64,000 nt of DNA, taken from positions 1 through 64,000 of the forward strand of contig JAAILG010000954.1 in the NCBI GenBank assembly GCA_012026655.1, read 5' to 3'. Numbering within the stretch: position 1 is the first letter of the stretch; each line of letters begins with the position of its first letter. Below are positions 24,765 through 62,514 of the stretch, in pieces. Source of the stretch: Hydrolagus affinis (taxonomy: Eukaryota). A program made the translations under genes and the position numbers. The notes under the pieces were generated by a model. That model did not search any database. It saw only the letters and a program-made list of their open reading frames with translations, and was not told where the DNA came from.

Positions 24765-25066
24765 TACTGTAGCTCAGTTGTTAGAGCACTCGCTTTACTA
24801 GCAAGAGAACTGAGTTCAATTCCCGGCAGGGTAAAACCTTGGGCAAGGTTTCTTACTCCACCGCTTGATAATAATAATCTCTCAAACAAAATTGGTCATT
24901 TCAATCCATGACTGTTTGTGGGACACTGCTGTGCGCAATTGGTTGCAGCGTTTCCATGACATATATACAGCCAATCCACTTTACAATATATTCTGTTAAG
25001 TGCTTTCAGATGTCTAGAAGACGTGAAAAGCCCTATATCAAATGCAAGGATTATTATTATTATTAT
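24765..25066 (+). mobile_element. tRNA-derived SINE
   Basis: Same head, body and (att)n tail. Confidence 0.87.
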
Positions 25067-25099
25067 CACATTACTACCACCACCCCCCCACCCGCCCCC

Positions 25100-25470
25100 T
25101 CCAACTCACTGCCCTCCTCTCACACTCACTGCCCCCCTCAAACATTCCCCCTTCACACACACTGCACCCTCTCACTCACTGTCCCCTTCACACTCAATAC
25201 CCCCTCACACTCACTGCCCCCTCTCACTCACTGTCCCCTTCACACTCACTGCCCCCTCTCACACTCACTGTCCCCCCTCACACACTCACTGCTCCCCTCT
25301 CACACTCACTGCCCCGTCTCATATTCCTCCCTTCACACTCACTGTCCCCCCTCTCACACTCACTGTCCCGTCTCAGAATTCCCACACTCACTCTCCTAAC
25401 ACACTCACTGCCCCCTCTCACACTCACTGTCCCCCATACTCCTCACACTCACCATCCCCTCCACACCGCT
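25100..25470. repeat. ~19-bp minisatellite (ctcacactcactgccccct)n in WDHD1 intron 1
   Basis: Tandem imperfect units read directly from the sequence. Confidence 0.9.
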
Positions 25471-25487
25471 CACACACTCTACCTTAC

Positions 25488-25590
25488 CGTCTCTCTGTCT
25501 CTCCCTCAATGGCTTCACTCCGAGGCGGCGGTTACTCTCCTCGCTCAGCGCGAGCCCAGCTTTCTCACTGACACACACCGTCTTTCCCGC
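25488..25590 (-). other. WDHD1: Probable non-coding exon 1 of WDHD1 (5' end approximate)
   Basis: Donor ACG|GTAAGG at 25488/25487 at the edge of the CpG island. The ATG-bearing exon has an acceptor at 24093/24092, so an upstream exon is required. Confidence 0.65.
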
Positions 25591-26080
25591 CACTCGCTAC
25601 GTCACAGGTCAAGCCGCGCTAGGGGGGCGTTTTCAAACCAAACGCGTCATCATCGACTCCCTTCCCCCCCCCCCCCCCACCACTAACACCAACGGCCGTC
25701 CCGAGGGGTTGTGGGGGGTTCTGACTTTCAAAATGACACAATGACGAACCATTTGGATGGAGGGCGGCTGTCAATACATTTGATGTAAATAATAATGTGG
25801 TTTATTTTTGCGACATGAGGAGGAGAGGGGAAGTGTCCGTGTGGGTCGGTTGTAACCGTCATTTCCGCCGCTCAGTTAGTCGCGTCCGGGGGTCACAGTG
25901 TGAAGGGATCGGGCGGCTCGAGGCCTGCGAACGTCCGTTTCTCTCCCTTTCTCTCCCCTCAACTGTCAAACACCCCTTGACACCCGATGCTGTCTTATTA
26001 TAACGTCCTCCTCCCGGCGAAGTAATAGAGAGGGTTGAGGAAAAAAAACAACCTGAGCTGCCGGGCATTGCTAGGTAAGG
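25490..26080. promoter_or_regulatory. CpG-rich bidirectional promoter WDHD1/SOCS4
   Basis: CpG-dense island between head-to-head genes. E2F site TTTCCCGCC 25583-25591, CRE-like TGACGTA (-) 25598-25604, CHR TTTGAA (-) 25632-25637, ETS GGAAGT 25829-25834. Confidence 0.8.
25840..26074 (+). other. SOCS4: Probable non-coding exon 1 of SOCS4 (5' end approximate)
   Basis: Donor TAG|GTAAGG at 26074/26075. Candidate acceptor ttttccccttgtag| at 27867/27868 upstream of the CDS. Confidence 0.6.
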
Positions 26081-26437: not shown

Positions 26438-27157
26438 AAACAACAGCAACTACAACAAAACTGCACTTGTGTAGCGCCTTTCACGTCAGGAGGACGTCCC
26501 GAGGCGCTGGACAGTCATTGTTTCAGACCAGAGCTGGGATCGGGGTCTGGGAGGGTGGAGGGTAAAGGAGGGATTTAGGGTGACCGATGGGACCGTCGAA
26601 GAGGAGGGTCTTGAGGCGAGACTTGAAGGAAGTCAGGGAGGGGGCGAGAAGGAGTTCCAGAGGTTGGGGGCAGAGTGGCTGGAGGTTTGCCCGCCAGTGG
26701 TGGGGTGGGTAGGTCTGGGGACGTGGAGCAGGCTGGAGCCTGCTGAGCGGAGGGGCAGGAAGGTTGGTAGGCAGTTTGGAAATCGCAGTGGGGTGAGGCC
26801 GTGAAGGGCTTTGACTGTGTGTGAGGACCAGGATCTTGAATTGGATCCTCTAGGTGATGTGGAGCCAATGGAGTCAGGCGAGGATGGGGTAGATGAGGGT
26901 CACAAAGCTTGGAGTGGTAGAGGACATGGGCCTCAGAGATCTGGATTATCAGCAACCCATGGAGGGAGGAATTGGGAAGGCAGACAAGCAGGGCATTGTG
27001 ATGAAGGCATGAATGAGGGTTTTAGCTGCCTGGGGGATGAGGTAATGGTGGAATCGGGCAATATTGCGGAGGTGAGGGAAGGCAGAATGGGTCATTGCTT
27101 GGATGTGGGGAGGAAAGACAGTTGAGGATTGAACGTGACACCTAGGTTTCTGACAAG
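26438..27157 (-). mobile_element. L2 LINE 3' fragment in SOCS4 intron 1
   Basis: Reverse of the L2 tail (gcgcctttcacgtc-ggaggacgtcc; aac repeats) joined to degenerate ORF2 C-terminal sequence. Confidence 0.8.
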
Positions 27158-28036: not shown

Positions 28037-29350
28037 ATGTCAGAGGAAAAAGGAGCAACATCTCGAAATGTAGATGTAAGGCCCAAAGTCAACCGAGGCA
28101 GAAGTGCTGATCATAAGGATGGTTATGCTTGGAGTGGTAAGAGGTCACGTTCAACTAAAACTGAAGCTTCTTCAGGTAGCGAGGAGAGACAAACATCTGG
28201 AAAACAATCAATCCCTTCACGAAGAAGGGAAAGAAGATTGAGCTCCTCTTCTAGACAAGATGTTGATGATTGTGTATGCAAACTACCCAGTCGATCACTG
28301 AAACAGAAGATCCAAGATGCAATAGTTCAGTGTTTCCCAGTTAAGGTACATAACCATAAACACTCTGCAGCTCTCACTTCAAAAAGAAAAATTCACATCA
28401 GTGAACTGATGTTGGATAGTTGCCCTTTCCCAGTTGGTTCTGAGCTAGCTCAGAAATGGCACTTGATTAAGTGGCACACTGTTCCAGGGACTCAAAGGTG
28501 TGGGGTTTGGGGAGCATCAGCAGTGGGATTTGCTGATGATGAGGATGACAGGCTACGGGAAAGACGCAGAATGAGCATTGAACAAGGTGTTGATCCTCCT
28601 CCGAATGCACAGATTCACACATTTGAAGTGATATCCCAGACCAATGCACTGCACGGCCCAAAGTTACCACTTGGGATGAATGAATTAACCTCTGAGAGAG
28701 GGTTTCATTTTCAAAACAATGAAATTGACTCTGATGATGAAGTGTTGACTCTTACACAATCTCAAAAGCAGAATGGAGCAAAAATGGATTCTGATGAGGG
28801 AATAAATCATCCAACTTCACTTCATAAAGACCATACCCAGATTGACTACATTCACTGCCTAGTCCCAGATCTATTTTGGATCAGTAAGAATCCAAGCTAT
28901 TGGGGTGTTATGGATAGATATGGTGCTGAGGCTTTGTTAGAAGGTAAGCCAGAAGGAACATATCTGCTCAGAGACTCGGCCCAAGAGGACTATCTGTTCT
29001 CTGTCAGTTTCAGACGCTATAGCCGCTCCCTCCATGCCAGAATTGAACAATGGAATTACAACTTCAGTTTCGATGCTCATGATCCCTGTGTCTTTCATGC
29101 ACCTAGTGTAACTGGTCTCTTGGAGCATTACAAAGACCCAAATTCCTGTATGTTCTTTGAGCCGCTGCTGTCACTTCCACTGAACAGGACCTTTCCCTTT
29201 TCACTTCAGCACCTCTGCAGAGCTGTAATTTGCAGCTACACTACCTATGATGGCATTCATAGTCTTTCCGTGCCACCAGCAATGAAAACTTACTTGAAGG
29301 AATACCACTACAAACAAAAAGTTCGAGTGTTCAGGTGCGATGAACTGTAG
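28037..29350 (+). CDS. SOCS4: Suppressor of cytokine signaling 4 (single coding exon, 437 aa)
   Basis: N-terminus NVDVRPKVNRGRSADHKDGYAWSGK is SOCS4-type. SH2 domain WGVMDRYGAEALLEGKPEGTYLLRDS, SOCS box PFSLQHLCRAVIC...LKEYHYK. Head-to-head with WDHD1 like mammalian SOCS4. Confidence 0.95.
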   Translation: MSEEKGATSRNVDVRPKVNRGRSADHKDGYAWSGKRSRSTKTEASSGSEERQTSGKQSIPSRRRERRLSSSSRQDVDDCVCKLPSRSLKQKIQDAIVQCFPVKVHNHKHSAALTSKRKIHISELMLDSCPFPVGSELAQKWHLIKWHTVPGTQRCGVWGASAVGFADDEDDRLRERRRMSIEQGVDPPPNAQIHTFEVISQTNALHGPKLPLGMNELTSERGFHFQNNEIDSDDEVLTLTQSQKQNGAKMDSDEGINHPTSLHKDHTQIDYIHCLVPDLFWISKNPSYWGVMDRYGAEALLEGKPEGTYLLRDSAQEDYLFSVSFRRYSRSLHARIEQWNYNFSFDAHDPCVFHAPSVTGLLEHYKDPNSCMFFEPLLSLPLNRTFPFSLQHLCRAVICSYTTYDGIHSLSVPPAMKTYLKEYHYKQKVRVFRCDEL

Positions 29351-34507: not shown

Positions 34508-35428
34508 TTCTGATAGGCCCTCACACCACTCTATCAATGAGCAAATGTCACTTAAGAGTAAATATTGATTAGATTTTAGTCTGAATGTCAACTTAAAATG
34601 ATCAATATTATAACTTGGTCTTGATACAAATAGCTATTCCTGTGTGAAGTACGCTATATAAATGCAAGTTATTGCCTGTTGTATAACAACGTATGATCAC
34701 CAATTAGCATATGCACACTAAAAGCAGACAAGCTCCATCAGCACACATCATCCTTCAAATTATGATAGAGAGCGTCAAAATGAGCAATTGAGCCTCCTGT
34801 TGTCACACTTCACCTCAAATTACTTTTGAAGATCAACAATGCTATTTGAAATATTCTGACTACGAATGGAGCCGGATATTTTGGGAAGCAATTCTTAGGG
34901 TCCACACTCAAATCATACTTATGACATTGGTTTGCTTACATAACTGACAATCAATAAGCAGCAGAGATCACTCAACAGTGAGGCTTGCTGGAAACATACA
35001 TTCAATGAAACATATCCAGTTTGACAAGAAAAATTTACAGGCTTTTGTAAAAGCTATTGAGAGCACTAAAAGTTGAATCAGCGGCAAAACATTCGGCCTT
35101 TCCATTCAATGTTCAATTTGGTACATTTGGTAGTTACAAAATAACTAAAATCATTTATAAAAATGTTAGCATATCAGACAGCTTTGCCTCGTCCCATTTC
35201 CTCTTCGCATCCCATTAATTCAACACGACTGCTTGGTTTGTTTCAAAGATCTGCTCTCAGCAGGAACGTGGGATCAAAACTGGTGACGAGCAAGCTAAAT
35301 GGACTTTGTGAGGTATCAGAGAAGGTAATTGGCAAATCACACCTCACAGAATTTCATGCCATCAAGCATAGATTTTTTTTCTTCTGTTTCGCTCAATCAC
35401 TGCTAAATAAGGCAAATGCTGTTTTTTT

Positions 35429-35556
35429 TCAAGGAAGATTGTGAAGTGGGTTTTCAAAATACAGTGGAGTGGATTCTGGCAACCTTTGGTGATAATACTT
35501 TCTACTTACAAGGAGCAGTACAAACATTTCCAGAATCTTTGCATGGTGATCTATTT
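35429..35556 (-). CDS. OSTalpha-like terminal coding exon
   Basis: CTACAG| acceptor. Encodes (Q)[41 protein letters not shown]. Confidence 0.85.
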
Positions 35557-38500
35557 CTGTAGATAAATGATAGGCAAGTTATTGGAAGGAAATGATAAAA
35601 AAAAATCTCAAAATATCCGATTGCTGACATAGTAATTAAACAAACTGACATGCATGAGATTATCATCACAATGTAGAATTAGCAACAATTTGTGTAGCGT
35701 TTTTCTTATACAGTGGGAGGACATCTTAAATTGCTTCACTCAACCGAAAGGGGAAAATAGATGAACATTGCAGGAATGATTGCCTGGAATTATTTGAACA
35801 GGAATAGTTGGGCTGGAGAATATTTATCACATTTATAGAAGTGCAAAATACAATGCCAGTAATAGGAACTGCGGGGAGGTGCCAAGATAAACAACATCCC
35901 ACATATTTCCTGTTAACTAAGAATGGAACATTCCAGCCTCATCATGTTAAAATACCCTGCCGGCCTTCATTGTTCAGGTTCACACCAAGAATGGGGAGTA
36001 AATTTGAGCAACCAAAGCATCACGACAAAGCCTAATCCTGTCTTTATCTGACATCTGCATGGGAAAATGTTCCAGCAAGGATCAATTGATAACAGCCATG
36101 GGCAGGACCTCTCTTGGGTTGTAAGGTTTTTTCAACTTTCCCGGTTGAAATCAGCTAATTCAGCACAGCCGGGGGGAGAATTGTGCTTTAAACCTGCTCT
36201 GTTTGGCTCATATTAGTTATGGTCTTTCTCCAGTGAGCTTCAAATCTGTATCTAAATATACTGCTTAACAATATTTCAGAGGACAATCCTTATTCAACAT
36301 TACAATTAGGTGGCAATTGTGTATCCTGCTGAAATCTAGATTCAAATTCTAAGTGTAACTATTGTATTTTGCTGCATACAAAGGACAATCTGATGTCTGT
36401 ACTGAGAAATTTGATATTGCTACAGTACCACGATACTTACGTAATGCTCTGTTTTTGGAGGAATACAGGGGTACGCAAGGAATGACATTGTAAGTTGCAA
36501 GACTGCTCAGTATCAGTGGCTGAAGATTGCAAACAATGACGTAGACAATGATAATTGCATATTTAGCCACAAGATGATATCCTGTTTCTGCAATGCCAAT
36601 GGCTGCTTTCAGCAACAAGTTAAATGCATATAAGGATAAAAAAGCAGACACATTCAGCAGAATCTTGATGTAGAACAAGGGATCACTTAGATGTACCTGG
36701 AAAAGAAAGTTTCATTTATTAATATAGCTCAATCTTAAATTTCAAGCCTTGAGGGCCACTTCAGAATTATTATCCAACATATATTCATTTATATACAACA
36801 TATTTTATTATACAACGTATATTAATTCCCAGTACCTTGGGACATCTTCCTGACATGAAAGGCGCCCTTTTAATGTAATTTTGTTGTTGTTGTTCAGGAA
36901 AGTACAATATCTTTTTCTAGAATATATTGTAATTCATAAACTGATTTAAATAAAGTATAGTACATTTTGGTGTTTCTAAACTACACCATCAGTGAGAAGA
37001 TACAAAGCCAAACATTTTACTAAATATGAAATGAGTAAAATATAAAGCATTACAAGAATTAAATTAAACTGGAAAGGATACTAATGATATATATTTTGCC
37101 AAAGTTGCACTTTATTCCAGGACCAAATTCAGGTATTCGAGGATCCAGTGGAATTTTAGATAATCATTAAGATTAAATTGTCAATTTTAGCATAGATTAT
37201 TCATTCTGTTAGCACCCAAAGGTCATAAAACACAATGTAAACTTAATTTTGCTGAAGCTAGCAAAATTAAATCTGCTGATAAAAATTAACCCCTTCGTGA
37301 ATGAAATGAATTGCCTGAATTCTTGGATGTGAAAAAAAATGCAGACCGGATTCAAAGTTACCTGTCCATTATTATATTCGCCATCAGCCCATAGGATGGT
37401 AGAGATAAACTGGAGTAAAGGCTGCAGGGTCAATGCCTGCAAGATGCCAATTCGAAGGATTTTGTAAGCTTTTCTGTGGGACACATATCCCAAATAATGT
37501 TAATTATCAGAATTACATTTCTGGATTTACTTTCTAAAGTATCACACACAACCCACATTTCCTCTTTTATGTGTTGCATAGTTCCAGTCATCTTTATTTA
37601 GTTCATTGCTGATATAATGGAATATCAGACATTGTGTAACAATAAATACTCCTTGCCTTTGATAAAATGCTTTTTACATCAGCAGGACATCCTAAAGTGC
37701 TTGAATAGATTTATTAAAACGAGGCATAATTATGAAGTTTAAAAAAGCATTTTTATCAGGAGGATTTTTAGCCAGGACAGACAGAAGAAACTATCTTCTC
37801 TTTTTATACAGCACCACGGGATGTTTAACATCCAGTTGAATGTTACCCTGTGTGAAGGGCGCTATATAATTGCATGTTGTTGTTGTTGATTAAGTAGAAG
37901 GGACCCTGAATTAAGTCTTTGCTTTGTGAACTACAAAACAAGTTCATTCATATAAAACATTAACCATGAACCTGCAAATGTCATATGCAAATATTGTTTT
38001 ATTCAATATTACATTATTGTACTTATTATCTTCATTTCAAATGATCCCAATGTTTTGTTACTCAGAGTGAAATGTGATCCGGATAAATGACTAATATAGT
38101 AAATATATGCAATTTGTTCTCAATTTTTAACCTTATATTTTATGAGTTTATACTTTTACAATTATTTTACTTGGTCGGATTCTCACATTTAATAAACAAG
38201 TACATAGTTCATCAAGAAAGACATTTAAGACACCAAGTCTTAAAAACCAGACATGCAAAGCATTTTCATACAATTTATTGCTCACAGACAAAAAGGATCC
38301 TGGACCACTTGATATCTATAGGGAACAGTTTAAGGTAAGAATGACAGGATCAGTTTTATTCCTCTCTACACTGTTTTGTTGGTGGCATCTCAATTTATCA
38401 GATTCCAAGAGTCCCACACAATGGATGAACTAAGACATCCACAATGAATGATTCATGGTTCACTGGATGTTAATTGAGCAAATAGAAAGCAATAAAGAAA

Positions 38501-41500
38501 AACACCATAGGATATAATAGCTATGTATTACATTGTTAAAAGAAATATGGCAATACTATACCTGCTTATTTTGACCTTTGGTAGGCAGGTACAACAGCAG
38601 CAGCAAGGTCCCAAATTTAATGGTGTATCCACATATTGCAGTTTATCAATAGCTTCAGTGACTCCTCCAAGGTAAGCAATAGTGAGGTGGAAGAAACCAA
38701 ACAATGATAAACTGGCATATCTAAGTAGAGAAAGTCAGATTAGACATCAAAAATACATCCCTTATCAATGCAGTTATGCAAAGCATCTTTAATATACAAT
38801 ACAGTACGAGTAAGTGGAGTCCTGTAGCTCAGTGGTTAGAGGACTCGCCTCACAAGTGAGAGACCTGGGTTTGATTCCCAGCAGAGCGAAATATTGTGCA
38901 AGTTTCCTTACTCCACATGCCTCTGTTTACCTAGCAGTAAGTAGGAACCCAGTTGTTAGTTGATTGGCGGAACGCTTTTCCGAGGGTCATAATTCGTTTA
39001 ATTATTCATTTTAATCCACGTCTGTTTGTGGGACACAGCTATGTGCAATTATCTGCCACGTTTCACCCACAAACTGTAGTCAATTCACTTTGCATATATT
39101 TTGTGAAGAATATATGACGCGGTAAGGCACTATATGCAATGTAAGGATTAATATTATTACTGTATTATTATTACGTTACTTACACTGCACTCACAAAGTC
39201 CACCAGGATTCCTGCTCTTGGAACAAACATCCCCAACTGATAAGCAACGGTAGTTACCTAAGAAAAAAAAGAGCAGAATTGTTTTCCTGAGATTGCTTTA
39301 TCTCCTGTACTTTGTATTTATGTGAAGGTTCACAGAACCACAAACTTAAGCAGTGTTTGGCTGTGATGAAAATCACCATGATGCCAACTGAACATCCTGT
39401 AAACTATGTTATTAAAGTGCGGGTGGGAGAAAGGAGTAGAAAGCGGTAGAGAAAGGAATCCCTGTACTAAAACTACTGCTAGTCAACAACCAAAACGGTT
39501 CCACATGTTTAGGCCCTTTACACATAGAAATTTCCTAACATCGAATGGGATGTGCACTCTCTCCCTGTAGGGATGTATGTTTCTTTACCTAATTCTGGAG
39601 AGTGTTAGATACAGTTTGACAAGAGTCAAGATTTGGGGATCCCAGTGTGTGTGTGTGTGTGAGTGGTATGTGTTAGGGTACTATTGGAGTACTAACAGCA
39701 CATAGTTTGCAATTGAGAGCATAGCCTGGCAAGCTTCCTATCCATTAGGTCTTTGGCTCAACAAATGAGCTGACTGAGAGTGTACATCATGTAATGAGGT
39801 CTGCAATGTATCTTGATGGTTAAATTACAGTAATGGCAATAATAATAATCCTTGCATTTGATATAGCGCTTTTCATGTCTTCAAGATGTCTCAAAGTGCT
39901 TCACAGAATATACTGTAAAGTAAATTGACTGTACAGATGTTGGGTGAAATGCAGCAGCCAATTGCGCACAGCAGTATCCCACACACAGTCATGGATTGAG
40001 TGACCAAATTATTATAGTTTTTTTTGAATGGTTTATTATTAAGCTTATGGAGTAAGGAAACTTGCCCAAGGTTTCGCCCTGACCTGCCTGGATTCGAAAC
40101 ACAGGTCTCTCACTTGTAAGGTGAGTGCTCCAACCACTGAGCTACAGGATTCCACAATACAATACTTACAGGAAATAAGGCCAGCACCACCATAGTTTTC
40201 TCCTTGATTAAAGTATTCAAGACATTGTTGTTCACATATATCCATAGCTCTATGAAGATGCAATAATTGGCAATTGCTACAGCATTGAGTACAACCATGA
40301 CAGCAATTCCATCAGGTGTGAGGTCTAGAGTAAGAAGGGAATAAAAAGATACCAAATTGCTCTCAGTATTATTTGAATTTCCATGAAAAGTGGAACATTA
40401 AGCTGGCATTAGCAGTACAGTGATATCTGATAGTTAGAAATTACAAGGTAACAGTCAGTTTGTGATAGGATTTCACTCTGCCAGTATATCAATTGCATAC
40501 AATTTATTTCAGGAATTATACCACATTTCCATACAACTGATGCCATCCCTCTTCCCAACCAACCTTTCTCCCTCAGGCTTCAAGTGATAAATTACAGCAC
40601 CAGCTGTGTCTGGAACACTTTAAAATCAGTTCTAATGAAATCAGTTTCCAAGCAGTTTCTAAACTGACGCAGCCCAGATAACGCAAAGTTCATCAAATGC
40701 ACCTGCCTTTTTACAAACAGCACCCACAGCTCAGACGTCTCATACACTCAAGCTGGGCTTTGGTCAGCCTTCAATGGCAGTGATATGAAACATTCTGAGC
40801 CAACTTGCAATATAAAAGTCCCATTGTTTGGGGTGCTCATAGTTTCTCGCTGGCTTGCTGACGCCTTTGTCTTTATTTTCTGCTATCCCTGACTGGTTGT
40901 GACAGTGTTATTAATTGTGAGCTCCCATCACATCATGCTCAGCTGCGGAATGTTGGCAGAATATTAATGCCCTTTCCCTGCTACAATTCCACGCGTCTGA
41001 CTTTCAGATATGACTTGTAGAGATGTCCTCCCGACAAAAGATGTTGTACAGATGTGATTTTATTGTAGTTGTTGTTGTAGAATAGCCCCCAGTTTGCCTT
41101 GAAGACAAGGCTTTGCAGAAACCTTTGGGACTTCTTTGCCCCGCCGGTTTCGCTAAACTTCAAGCACATGCTGCTCAGTTGACATTTCAACAACAAGAAC
41201 AAAATTACATTTGTATAGCGCCTTTCATGTTGGGAGGACATCCTCCAGTTGGCCAGTCAATGCTTTGTATGCATTATTCCCACTGAATTCCTGCTTTTCA
41301 ATTCAAACTGTAAATATAAAATTGTCCTGCGCCCGAGCTCACAATCCAGCTGTCTGATCCAAATTGTTGCACTGTCGATTAGAATTTGCCTTTTGGATGA
41401 GACATAAACACACGGTCTGTTTGTAGGTGGAAGTTAAAGATTCCCCGATTCCATTCCAAAACAGAAAGGACTTCCCCTGTTTGGTCATGCTGGGGCCTGC

Positions 41501-41730
41501 TTTACAATTCTGTGATAGGAAAGAACAAAATGAAAGAGCAAGCAGATTTTCCTAGATTTAGTTACCCGGCTTCTCGAACCTGGAAACCTGCTCCCTGCAA
41601 GGAAAGCACACAATACGGCATTGAACAAATGTAAGCGAACATTCAGTAATCATTTGCAGTCATTCCGTAATGTAACTTTACCTTTAAGCAGGTCAAAAGA
41701 GTACGGCAAACTGTCACTGCAGTTGGGCAT
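35429..41730 (-). CDS. Organic solute transporter alpha-like (SLC51A/OSTalpha family), 7 coding exons, ~310 aa
   Basis: Exons 41682-41730, 40170-40324, 39184-39257, 38562-38720, 37362-37473, 36441-36696, 35429-35556. All GT-AG, phase-compatible, 933 nt with no internal stop. Contains the family Cys cluster [21 protein letters not shown]...[13 protein letters not shown] and [15 protein letters not shown], with about 7 hydrophobic segments. Confidence 0.9.
36441..36696 (-). CDS. OSTalpha-like coding exon 6
   Basis: 256 nt, TTTCCAG|...|GTAAGT. Encodes [14 protein letters not shown]...[28 protein letters not shown]. Confidence 0.9.
37362..37473 (-). CDS. OSTalpha-like coding exon 5
   Basis: 112 nt. 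Encodes [37 protein letters not shown]. Confidence 0.88.
38562..38720 (-). CDS. OSTalpha-like coding exon 4 (cysteine cluster)
   Basis: 159 nt. Encodes [19 protein letters not shown]...[20 protein letters not shown]. Confidence 0.92.
38814..39165 (+). mobile_element. tRNA-derived SINE, longer variant
   Basis: Same head and tail, plus an internal segment gcctctgtttacctagcagtaagtaggaaccc that the other copies lack. Confidence 0.87.
39184..39257 (-). CDS. OSTalpha-like coding exon 3
   Basis: 74 nt, TTAG|...|GTAAGT. Encodes [24 protein letters not shown] (compare human GLWIPRS). Confidence 0.87.
39841..40155 (-). mobile_element. tRNA-derived SINE
   Basis: Reverse-complement copy. Its head lies ~15 nt from the donor of OSTalpha-like exon 2. 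Confidence 0.87.
40170..40324 (-). CDS. OSTalpha-like coding exon 2 (TM1)
   Basis: 155 nt, CTAG|...|GTAAGT. Encodes [31 protein letters not shown]...LALFP. Confidence 0.85.
41325..41500 (+). mobile_element. Ancient Deu-domain SINE remnant
   Basis: gcactgtcg...ccttttggatgagacataaac...aggtggaagttaaagattccc resembles the recalled Deu core. A second antisense remnant lies at ~37762-37842. Confidence 0.55.
41682..41730 (-). CDS. OSTalpha-like coding exon 1 ([16 protein letters not shown])
   Basis: ACAATG start, donor G|GTAAAG, acceptor TACAG| at 41736/41735. Resembles the OSTalpha N-terminal Cys/Pro segment. Confidence 0.7.

Positions 41731-48549: not shown

Positions 48550-62514
<13,965 letters not shown>

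Follow-up and report, generated by a model that had tools for sequence, protein, structure and literature searches.

The alpha subunit of the organic solute transporter (OSTalpha, the product of SLC51A) is a bile-acid and steroid exporter and gives its name to the family of the gene reported here, and the recent human OSTalpha/beta structures indicate the residues that are worth comparing. In human OSTalpha the loop between helices 3 and 4 holds seven palmitoylated cysteines and Cys161 packs on Trp234. Helices 5 and 6 carry a lateral groove whose Arg241 and Arg244 bind the sulfate or sulfonate group and whose Gln260 contacts the bile acid, and a tunnel with Lys191 is gated by Pro209 and Glu116 (PMC13346981). 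Here an OSTalpha-like gene was examined in a 64,000 nucleotide stretch of DNA from Hydrolagus affinis, hereafter the window (contig JAAILG010000954.1 of assembly GCA_012026655.1, positions 1 to 64,000). The gene lies on the minus strand at 41730..35429 and had been proposed from the sequence alone (the original prediction). It is very probably intact and transcribed and belongs to a third OSTalpha-family branch of jawed vertebrates (gnathostomes), about 310 residues long and distinct from both SLC51A and a type catalogued as 'si:dkey-16n15.6'. Among the clusters found, this third branch (clade 3) is confined to chondrichthyans, bichir, lungfish and a small number of teleost lineages.

Gene structure and transcription

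Reading of the sequence together with a script check gave seven exons and six introns. The exon lengths total 933 nt, corresponding to 310 codons and a stop. All six introns run from GT to AG with a pyrimidine-rich tract before each AG, and their 5' ends are, in order, GTAAAG, GTAAGT, GTAAGT, GTATAG, GTAACT and GTAAGT. An in-frame stop is found 12 codons upstream of the ATG, with no intervening ATG. The seven GT-AG exons and uninterrupted frame of about 310 amino acids described in the original prediction are thus correct.

All exons are on the minus strand. Exon 1 (E1, 41730..41682, 49 nt) starts with the ATG at 41730 and contains 16 whole codons plus one base before the donor GT at 41681-41680. 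Its codons 3-5 (41724..41716) form an NCS sequon, and the start M-x-N-C-S is common to most members of clade 3. The first transmembrane helix and the following loop are encoded by E2 (40324..40170, 155 nt, 51 whole codons), and a conserved VPRA stretch by E3 (39257..39184, 74 nt, 24 whole codons). E4 (38720..38562, 159 nt, 52 whole codons) covers the end of helix 3, a short intracellular helix and a cysteine-rich motif of the GPCCCCCxCLP type with six cysteines at 38611..38579. Helix 4 is encoded by E5 (37473..37362, 112 nt, 37 whole codons) while E6 (36696..36441, 256 nt, 85 whole codons) encodes helices 5 and 6, the substrate-groove region in human OSTalpha. The coding part of E7 (35556..35429, 128 nt, 41 whole codons) supplies helix 7, the motif ILEMF...SRKYY and the C-terminal tail, and ends with TGA at 35431..35429. 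All three motifs named in the original prediction (the NCS sequon, the cysteine-rich signature and ILEMF...SRKYY) are therefore present, in E1, E4 and E7 respectively. Four codons are split by introns, by eye G|AC, GT|A, AG|A and C|AA.

Introns 2 and 3 contain two copies of a tRNA-like short interspersed nuclear element (SINE), at 39890-40160 (minus strand) and 38814-38963 (plus strand) respectively, whose head was read by eye as 'tagctcagtggttggagcac...gttcgaatcc'. The summed contig word depth over these SINEs reaches up to 12 million and the RNA depth is in the thousands. The open reading frames (ORFs) 39894-40109 and 39884-39988 were considered for exon 3 and rejected, as they had no Pfam match and correspond to the tail of the tRNA-like SINE.

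For homology searches the exons were translated as whole codons and each was searched separately. The Pfam scan covered eight stop-to-stop ORFs, six of them with true exons (E3 fell outside the scan), and the PF03619 (Solute_trans_a) cut-off was 24.9 bits. This family was matched by the ORFs of E5 (E = 3.9e-6, 26.8 bits) and E6 (E = 3.1e-8, 33.7 bits), and the other four true-exon ORFs scanned, including that of E2, gave no Pfam match. Against the PDB, human OSTalpha was matched by E6 (E = 3.3e-6) and, via the cysteine cluster, by E4 (9ljg_A, E = 5.2e-3). E5 alone had no PDB match and E2 alone only a chance match to adenylosuccinate lyase (E = 0.2). A search of E6 against 1.84 billion representative proteins gave 27 matches at E <= 1e-3, the best being a 185-residue fragment, 65% identical (9e-34), followed by the 313-residue protein P0003 (1.2e-14). 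A search of the ESM Atlas returned generic OSTalpha clusters only.

When the bichir member of clade 3 was used as the query, a protein of 310 residues from Callorhinchus milii was found (P0046, UniRef V9L032). Over its full length this orthologue scores 116.5 bits against PF03619, covering profile positions 7-263 of 267. The seven exon pieces from the window are collinear on P0046 without a gap, at residues 1-16, 18-68, 69-92, 94-145, 147-183, 184-268 and 270-310, and the residues left unmapped are exactly those of the four split codons, which encode the same residues in both species. Identity is 275/306 (about 90%) with no insertion or deletion, or, from E1 to E7, 11/16, 41/51, 23/24, 50/52, 34/37, 77/85 and 39/41. 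Since an independent protein of a related species matches all the exon pieces, every splice site is confirmed. Together with the PF03619 and PDB matches, this collinearity bears out the claim of an intact member of the OSTalpha family.

The C. milii RefSeq isoform P0147 (XP_007886317) has a different C-terminus, to which E7 is identical at only 14/41 residues, and an isoform from Heptranchias also ends early. These ends reflect either an alternative last exon or a mis-prediction.

Three polyA RNA runs (X2, X3 and X4) from one sample were placed on positions 34700-40699 at 90% likeness. In the repeat-free bins nearly all reads ran in one direction (first mate on the plus strand), the other direction reaching at most 0.34 and being zero in the exon bins. 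The 200-base bins that could be read show depth over E4 to E7 and the 3' untranslated region (UTR) in all three runs; those of E2 and E3 were not readable owing to the adjoining SINEs. Depth was 1.7-10 in the bins of the 3' UTR and E7 (34700-35499), with 7.0/6.7/6.8 for X2/X3/X4 in bin 35300-35499. In the same order it was 8.2/1.4/6.3 for E6 (36500-36699), 1.7/1.9/5.7 for E5 (37300-37499) and 4.0/0.8/1.0 for E4 (38500-38699). The intron bins gave 0 at 37900-38499, save one bin of 0.15 in X3, and at most 0.56 at 36900-37299. Depth also changed at the exon borders. For E6 it was 7/0/4 at 36474 and 5/2/4 at 36686, and outside the exon 0/0/1 at 36432 and 0/0/0 at 36706. For E4 it was 5/0/1 at 38707 and 0/0/0 outside, at both 38725 and 38524. 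For E5 it was 2/3/8 at 37460 and 0/0/0 outside, at 37615, 37218 and 37200. Below the stop codon, depth with the same strand sign as the exons continues through 34700..35428, a lower bound for the 3' UTR, and no canonical AATAAA was seen by eye in this interval. There is thus good evidence that the exons are part of a mature RNA from the minus strand whose 3' UTR measures 730 bases or more.

A further public run contained 53% of the sampled words of the region; it is probably DNA and may be the source of the window. At positions 34975, 35108, 35179, 35223, 35275, 36631 and 37460 all covering reads of the three RNA runs, and the DNA-like contigs, differ from the window. Since these seven positions differ in every covering read and in the contigs, the individual from which the window derives must be about 0.3-1% different from both samples.

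Place within the OSTalpha family

The bichir query gave 142 matches, of which the best 120 were listed; the other 22 score too low to belong to the clade 3 block. The first 25 clusters scored 300-699 bits and the next, a teleost slc51a, scored 145 bits. Sixteen of these 25 clusters come from as many chondrichthyan species (Callorhinchus, two from Scyliorhinus, two from Chiloscyllium, Carcharodon, Heterodontus, Heptranchias, Mustelus, Pristiophorus, Pristis, Hypanus, two from Mobula, Rhinoraja and Narcine), two from the bichir group and lungfish (Erpetoichthys and Protopterus), six from teleosts (Polymixia, Lampris, Lota, Arctogadus, Lepidogalaxias and Centroberyx) and one is a lungfish-like Logan contig. 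No tetrapod, coelacanth, gar, bowfin, sturgeon, ostariophysan, salmonid or percomorph protein is found in this block of 25. A coelacanth query (P0150; 238 matches, best 120 listed) led to a third type of protein, 'si:dkey-16n15.6', of about 410-430 residues. Among the matches listed this type (clade 2) occurs in sharks, bichir, lungfish, coelacanth, amphibians, squamates and many teleosts.

A maximum-likelihood tree was built from 64 rows, namely 63 proteins chosen from 270 and the E6 translation from the window. Three clades were obtained, each with support of 100/100, corresponding to clade 3, the teleost slc51a proteins and the 'si:dkey-16n15.6' type. Within clade 3 a chondrichthyan half (98/93) stands opposite a bony-fish half (99/94), matching the species tree, and E6 of the window is paired with Callorhinchus at 100/99. 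The outgroups Lingula and Glandiceps do not form a single outgroup for rooting. Polymixia carries all three types (P0028, P0143 and P0195), and clades 2 and 3 are found together in Heterodontus, Heptranchias, Erpetoichthys, Protopterus, Lampris and Centroberyx. With more than one type present in several species, this gene and SLC51A must have separated before the common ancestor of the jawed vertebrates. Sequence comparison therefore supports the view that the window gene is not an SLC51A orthologue but a member of a separate clade, one that arose no later than cartilaginous and bony fishes diverged. This agrees with the ancient paralogue of the original prediction, though not with its description as a second paralogue, as there are at least three vertebrate clades.

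Conservation, fold and putative function

An alignment of 19 clade 3 proteins contained 51 invariant and 34 near-invariant columns. The window retains the invariant residue at 50 of the former, the exception being Leu202, which is Phe. It retains 28 of the near-invariant residues and at the other six has the residue of C. milii.

Residues named in PMC13346981 were mapped by HMMER alignment onto the C. milii member of clade 3, onto slc51a from Salmo and onto the Heterodontus member of clade 2, and by eye the window exons agree with C. milii at the mapped sites. The seven clustered cysteines of the human protein are six in each of the three. Trp234 is Tyr in clade 3 and clade 2 and Trp in Salmo. 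In the groove, Arg241 is Lys in clade 3 and clade 2 and Met in Salmo, Arg244 is Ala in clade 3, Lys in clade 2 and Arg in Salmo, and Gln260 is Ile in clade 3 and clade 2 and Gln in Salmo. In the tunnel, Lys191 is Gln in clade 3, Arg in clade 2 and Lys in Salmo, Glu116 is Asp in both clade 3 and Salmo, and Pro209 is Asn in clade 3 and Val in Salmo. Clade 3 has thus kept the scaffold, the lipid anchor of the cysteine cluster and one basic residue of the groove, with three substrate or tunnel contacts changed.

An AlphaFold model was made for P0046, the 90% identical orthologue, with the 19-sequence alignment. It shows seven long helices with a further short one following helix 3, and its cysteine loop is disordered. 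The top three Foldseek matches of the model were human OSTalpha chains (E = 2.5e-9, TM 0.65-0.66, 27% identity).

The product is predicted to cross the membrane with seven helices and to have its N-terminus outside the cell and glycosylated. The loop joining helices 3 and 4 would carry an S-palmitoylated cysteine cluster, and in human OSTalpha this cluster holds the lipid-facing lateral groove of helices 5 and 6. The most likely cargo would be amphipathic, sterol-like anions moving down their gradient. The specificity is probably not that of SLC51A, since one alone of the two sulfate-binding arginines is retained, as Lys, and the positions of Arg244, Gln260 and Lys191 are occupied by Ala, Ile and Gln. 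Judged on residues and fold, the gene most likely encodes the same mechanical kind of carrier with another substrate range.

An alternative is that the gene stands in 1:1 orthology to SLC51A of human and skate and has merely evolved rapidly in cartilaginous fishes. The NCBI name of C. milii XP_007886317, 'organic solute transporter subunit alpha' without '-like', speaks for this, and no other canonical chondrichthyan SLC51A was present among the matches listed for the bichir and coelacanth queries or for a hemichordate query, which led to three hemichordate proteins. However, clade 3 also has bichir, lungfish and teleost members with internal branching that follows the species tree, and Polymixia has its clade 3 gene alongside a canonical-type slc51a. 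Uniting the window and the chondrichthyan rows of clade 3 with teleost slc51a costs 39 log-likelihood units and is rejected by the approximately unbiased (AU) test with p = 0.0004, for a group that was named after the tree was seen. In addition, against human OSTalpha in the PDB the C. milii protein scores 122 bits and Heterodontus clade 2 scores 109 bits, compared with 233 bits for slc51a of the salmonid Salmo. The C. milii protein is 27% (Foldseek) or about 29% (count of the HMMER match line) identical to human OSTalpha, as against 41% reported for skate Ostalpha (PMC5942847). The orthologue reading, under which the gene would not be a new paralogue, is thus largely refuted and must be considered highly improbable.

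Equally hard to credit is a decaying or silent relic, a unitary pseudogene in the making whose frame happens still to be open. Clade 3 has been lost from most vertebrate lineages, and of the five listed coding differences that separate the public runs from the window, four alter the residue (V258L, S187N, I151V and S98A; the fifth, at L205, is silent). These are a tiny and incomplete count of at least five, which does not by itself show purifying selection. A relic would not be expected to have a frame open across 310 codons and seven exons with canonical splice sites throughout, to retain all but one of the clade-invariant residues, to align with C. milii at 90% identity without an insertion or deletion, or to give polyA RNA on exons 4-7 and the 3' UTR in each of three runs. 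It is somewhat easier to imagine, though still unlikely, that the protein is functional and has the seven helices of the family but is no solute carrier, acting rather as a G protein-coupled receptor (GPCR)-like or trafficking regulator, as has recently been proposed for TM184C. SLC51A and TM184A-C are placed in one 'superdark' seven-helix family with GPCR-like features in PMC13581589, the Foldseek matches that follow the OSTalpha chains are all GPCRs, and three groove or tunnel residues of human OSTalpha are changed. These GPCR matches are weak (E >= 0.037, TM 0.3-0.5) and the protein is far closer to OSTalpha than to anything else, and it retains the cysteines whose cluster gives the transport groove its shape. 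With about 20 residues after helix 7, the C-terminal tail is short and leaves little space for arrestin-type motifs, and PMC13581589 itself describes SLC51A as alone in being without such arrestin-type codes.

Several points weigh against an intact, transcribed gene of a third carrier branch. RNA depth is confined to exons and strand-specific, but no exon-exon joint, the RNA-seq support sought by the original prediction, was among the joints listed, nearly all of which were repeat-derived from the intronic SINEs; splicing is inferred from depth edges and homology only. E1 lies outside the stretch on which the RNA was placed, and the RNA runs carry organism code B and the DNA run code A, with the tissue unstated. 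The tree contains neither tetrapod nor chondrichthyan canonical SLC51A, so that teleost slc51a stands for SLC51A, and the distinction from SLC51A depends on these teleost proteins, the PDB scores and the published skate-human identity cited above. Support is weak (43/25 and 55/45) for the order in which the three clades and the outgroups branch. The non-synonymous differences listed above count here as well. The Met of Salmo slc51a at Arg241 means that the groove residues are no strict family markers, and the model is a mediocre one (mean pLDDT 61, pTM 0.60) of the orthologue rather than of the window product. No transport data for any member of clade 3 were found in the literature.

Within the reading of a third carrier branch, a bolder scenario can be proposed, though we regard it as rather unlikely. 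Jawed vertebrates may have begun with at least three OSTalpha-type genes. The 310-residue branch would be a carrier dedicated to substrates of its own, perhaps working with a separate partner or with none, and tetrapods and most ray-finned fishes may have lost it independently of each other. One candidate class of substrate is the sulfated C27 bile alcohols found in chimaeras, sharks, lungfish and bichirs. If the scenario were true, SLC51 would be a family of three branches with the mammalian member as sole survivor, and the changes Arg244 to Ala, Gln260 to Ile and Lys191 to Gln would mark a switch in specificity.

Genomic surroundings and comparison with known genes

The gene lies between a SOCS gene and an actinin gene, in kind as the original prediction had placed it. 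In human, SLC51A is on another chromosome than GCH1, WDHD1 and SOCS4. An intact single-exon SOCS ORF of 437 residues is found at 28037-29350 on the plus strand, with Pfam matches to the SOCS box, the SOCS N-terminal domain and SH2. It is convergent with the OSTalpha-like gene and about 5 kb past position 34700, the lowest covered point of the 3' UTR. On the other side a minus-strand exon at 54290-54655 encodes alpha-actinin rod domain. In the PDB it matches 1sjj, 'actinin', best (E = 6.8e-26, 93.8 bits), with 77 bits against alpha-actinin-2, and it has no Pfam match at E <= 1e-3; the original prediction names the gene ACTN1. The first exon of GTP cyclohydrolase I was recognised by Pfam at 1502-2074 on the minus strand, and within 1502-2584 it adjoins a masked run of N at 2090-2278 as well as a low-complexity Cys/Val/Leu-Ser repeat. 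The GC-rich stretches (0.47-0.49) 24900-25700 (plus) and 26575-26955 (minus), which lie upstream of the SOCS gene, show a strong swing in GC skew and contain long low-complexity ORFs rich in Pro, His, Thr and Ser. They look like simple-repeat sequence, not a gene.

The gene is not hidden or new in the sense of the original prediction. Of the 25 clade 3 clusters, 24 are named in NCBI or UniRef, including that of C. milii (XP_007886317, UniRef V9L032). The labels read 'alpha-like' in 22 clusters and only 'unnamed protein product' in two, and the single Logan cluster is nameless. The window gene is accordingly the orthologue of an already predicted and named gene and an ordinary gene find. The literature searches, which did not extend to supplementary files, found no published description of clade 3. 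The term 'alpha-like' occurs only as a BLAST label for a chicken gene (PMC4592991), in a table row (PMC7011509) and in listings, and 'si:dkey-16n15.6' occurs in no paper of the literature searched. The chicken gene is near EIF2S3/PCYT1B according to PMC4592991, and may belong to the 'si:dkey-16n15.6' clade. NCBI naming is inconsistent, since the clade 3 protein of C. milii and clade 2 proteins of other species are both called 'organic solute transporter subunit alpha'. Labels nearly identical to that of SLC51A invite wrong orthology calls, as the C. milii entry illustrates. Besides SLC51A, two old genes of OSTalpha type are present in non-mammalian vertebrates, and these two extra branches are obvious candidates for the transport of bile salts and steroid conjugates in early vertebrates.

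Among the proteins compared, C. milii P0046 is the nearest, sharing with the window gene the length of 310 residues and all motifs, the NCS sequon and GPCCCCCxCLP among them, while differing at about 10% of residues. TMEM184A/B/C are of the same family PF03619 and have the same fold according to PMC13346981; they were absent from the matches listed for the E6, bichir and coelacanth queries, and no direct comparison with TMEM184 was made. The 'si:dkey-16n15.6' type (Latimeria P0150, Heterodontus P0160) resembles clade 3 in its N-terminal NCS, its six clustered cysteines and the Tyr at Trp234, and occurs in the same shark, bichir and lungfish species. It differs in its greater length with a long C-terminal tail, in forming its own clade and in a much wider range that, among the matches listed, takes in amphibians, squamates and most teleosts. 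Human OSTalpha (PDB 9ljg, 9uo2 and 9unv) shares with the window gene the Pfam family, the fold, the cysteine cluster of the helix 3-4 loop, the helix 7 motif ILExF...R.YY, an acidic residue at Glu116 (Asp) and a basic one at Arg241 (Lys). It differs in its low identity, in having seven cysteines rather than six and in an N-terminus that is longer by 28 residues in the alignment, in agreement with the shorter N-terminus originally predicted for the window gene.

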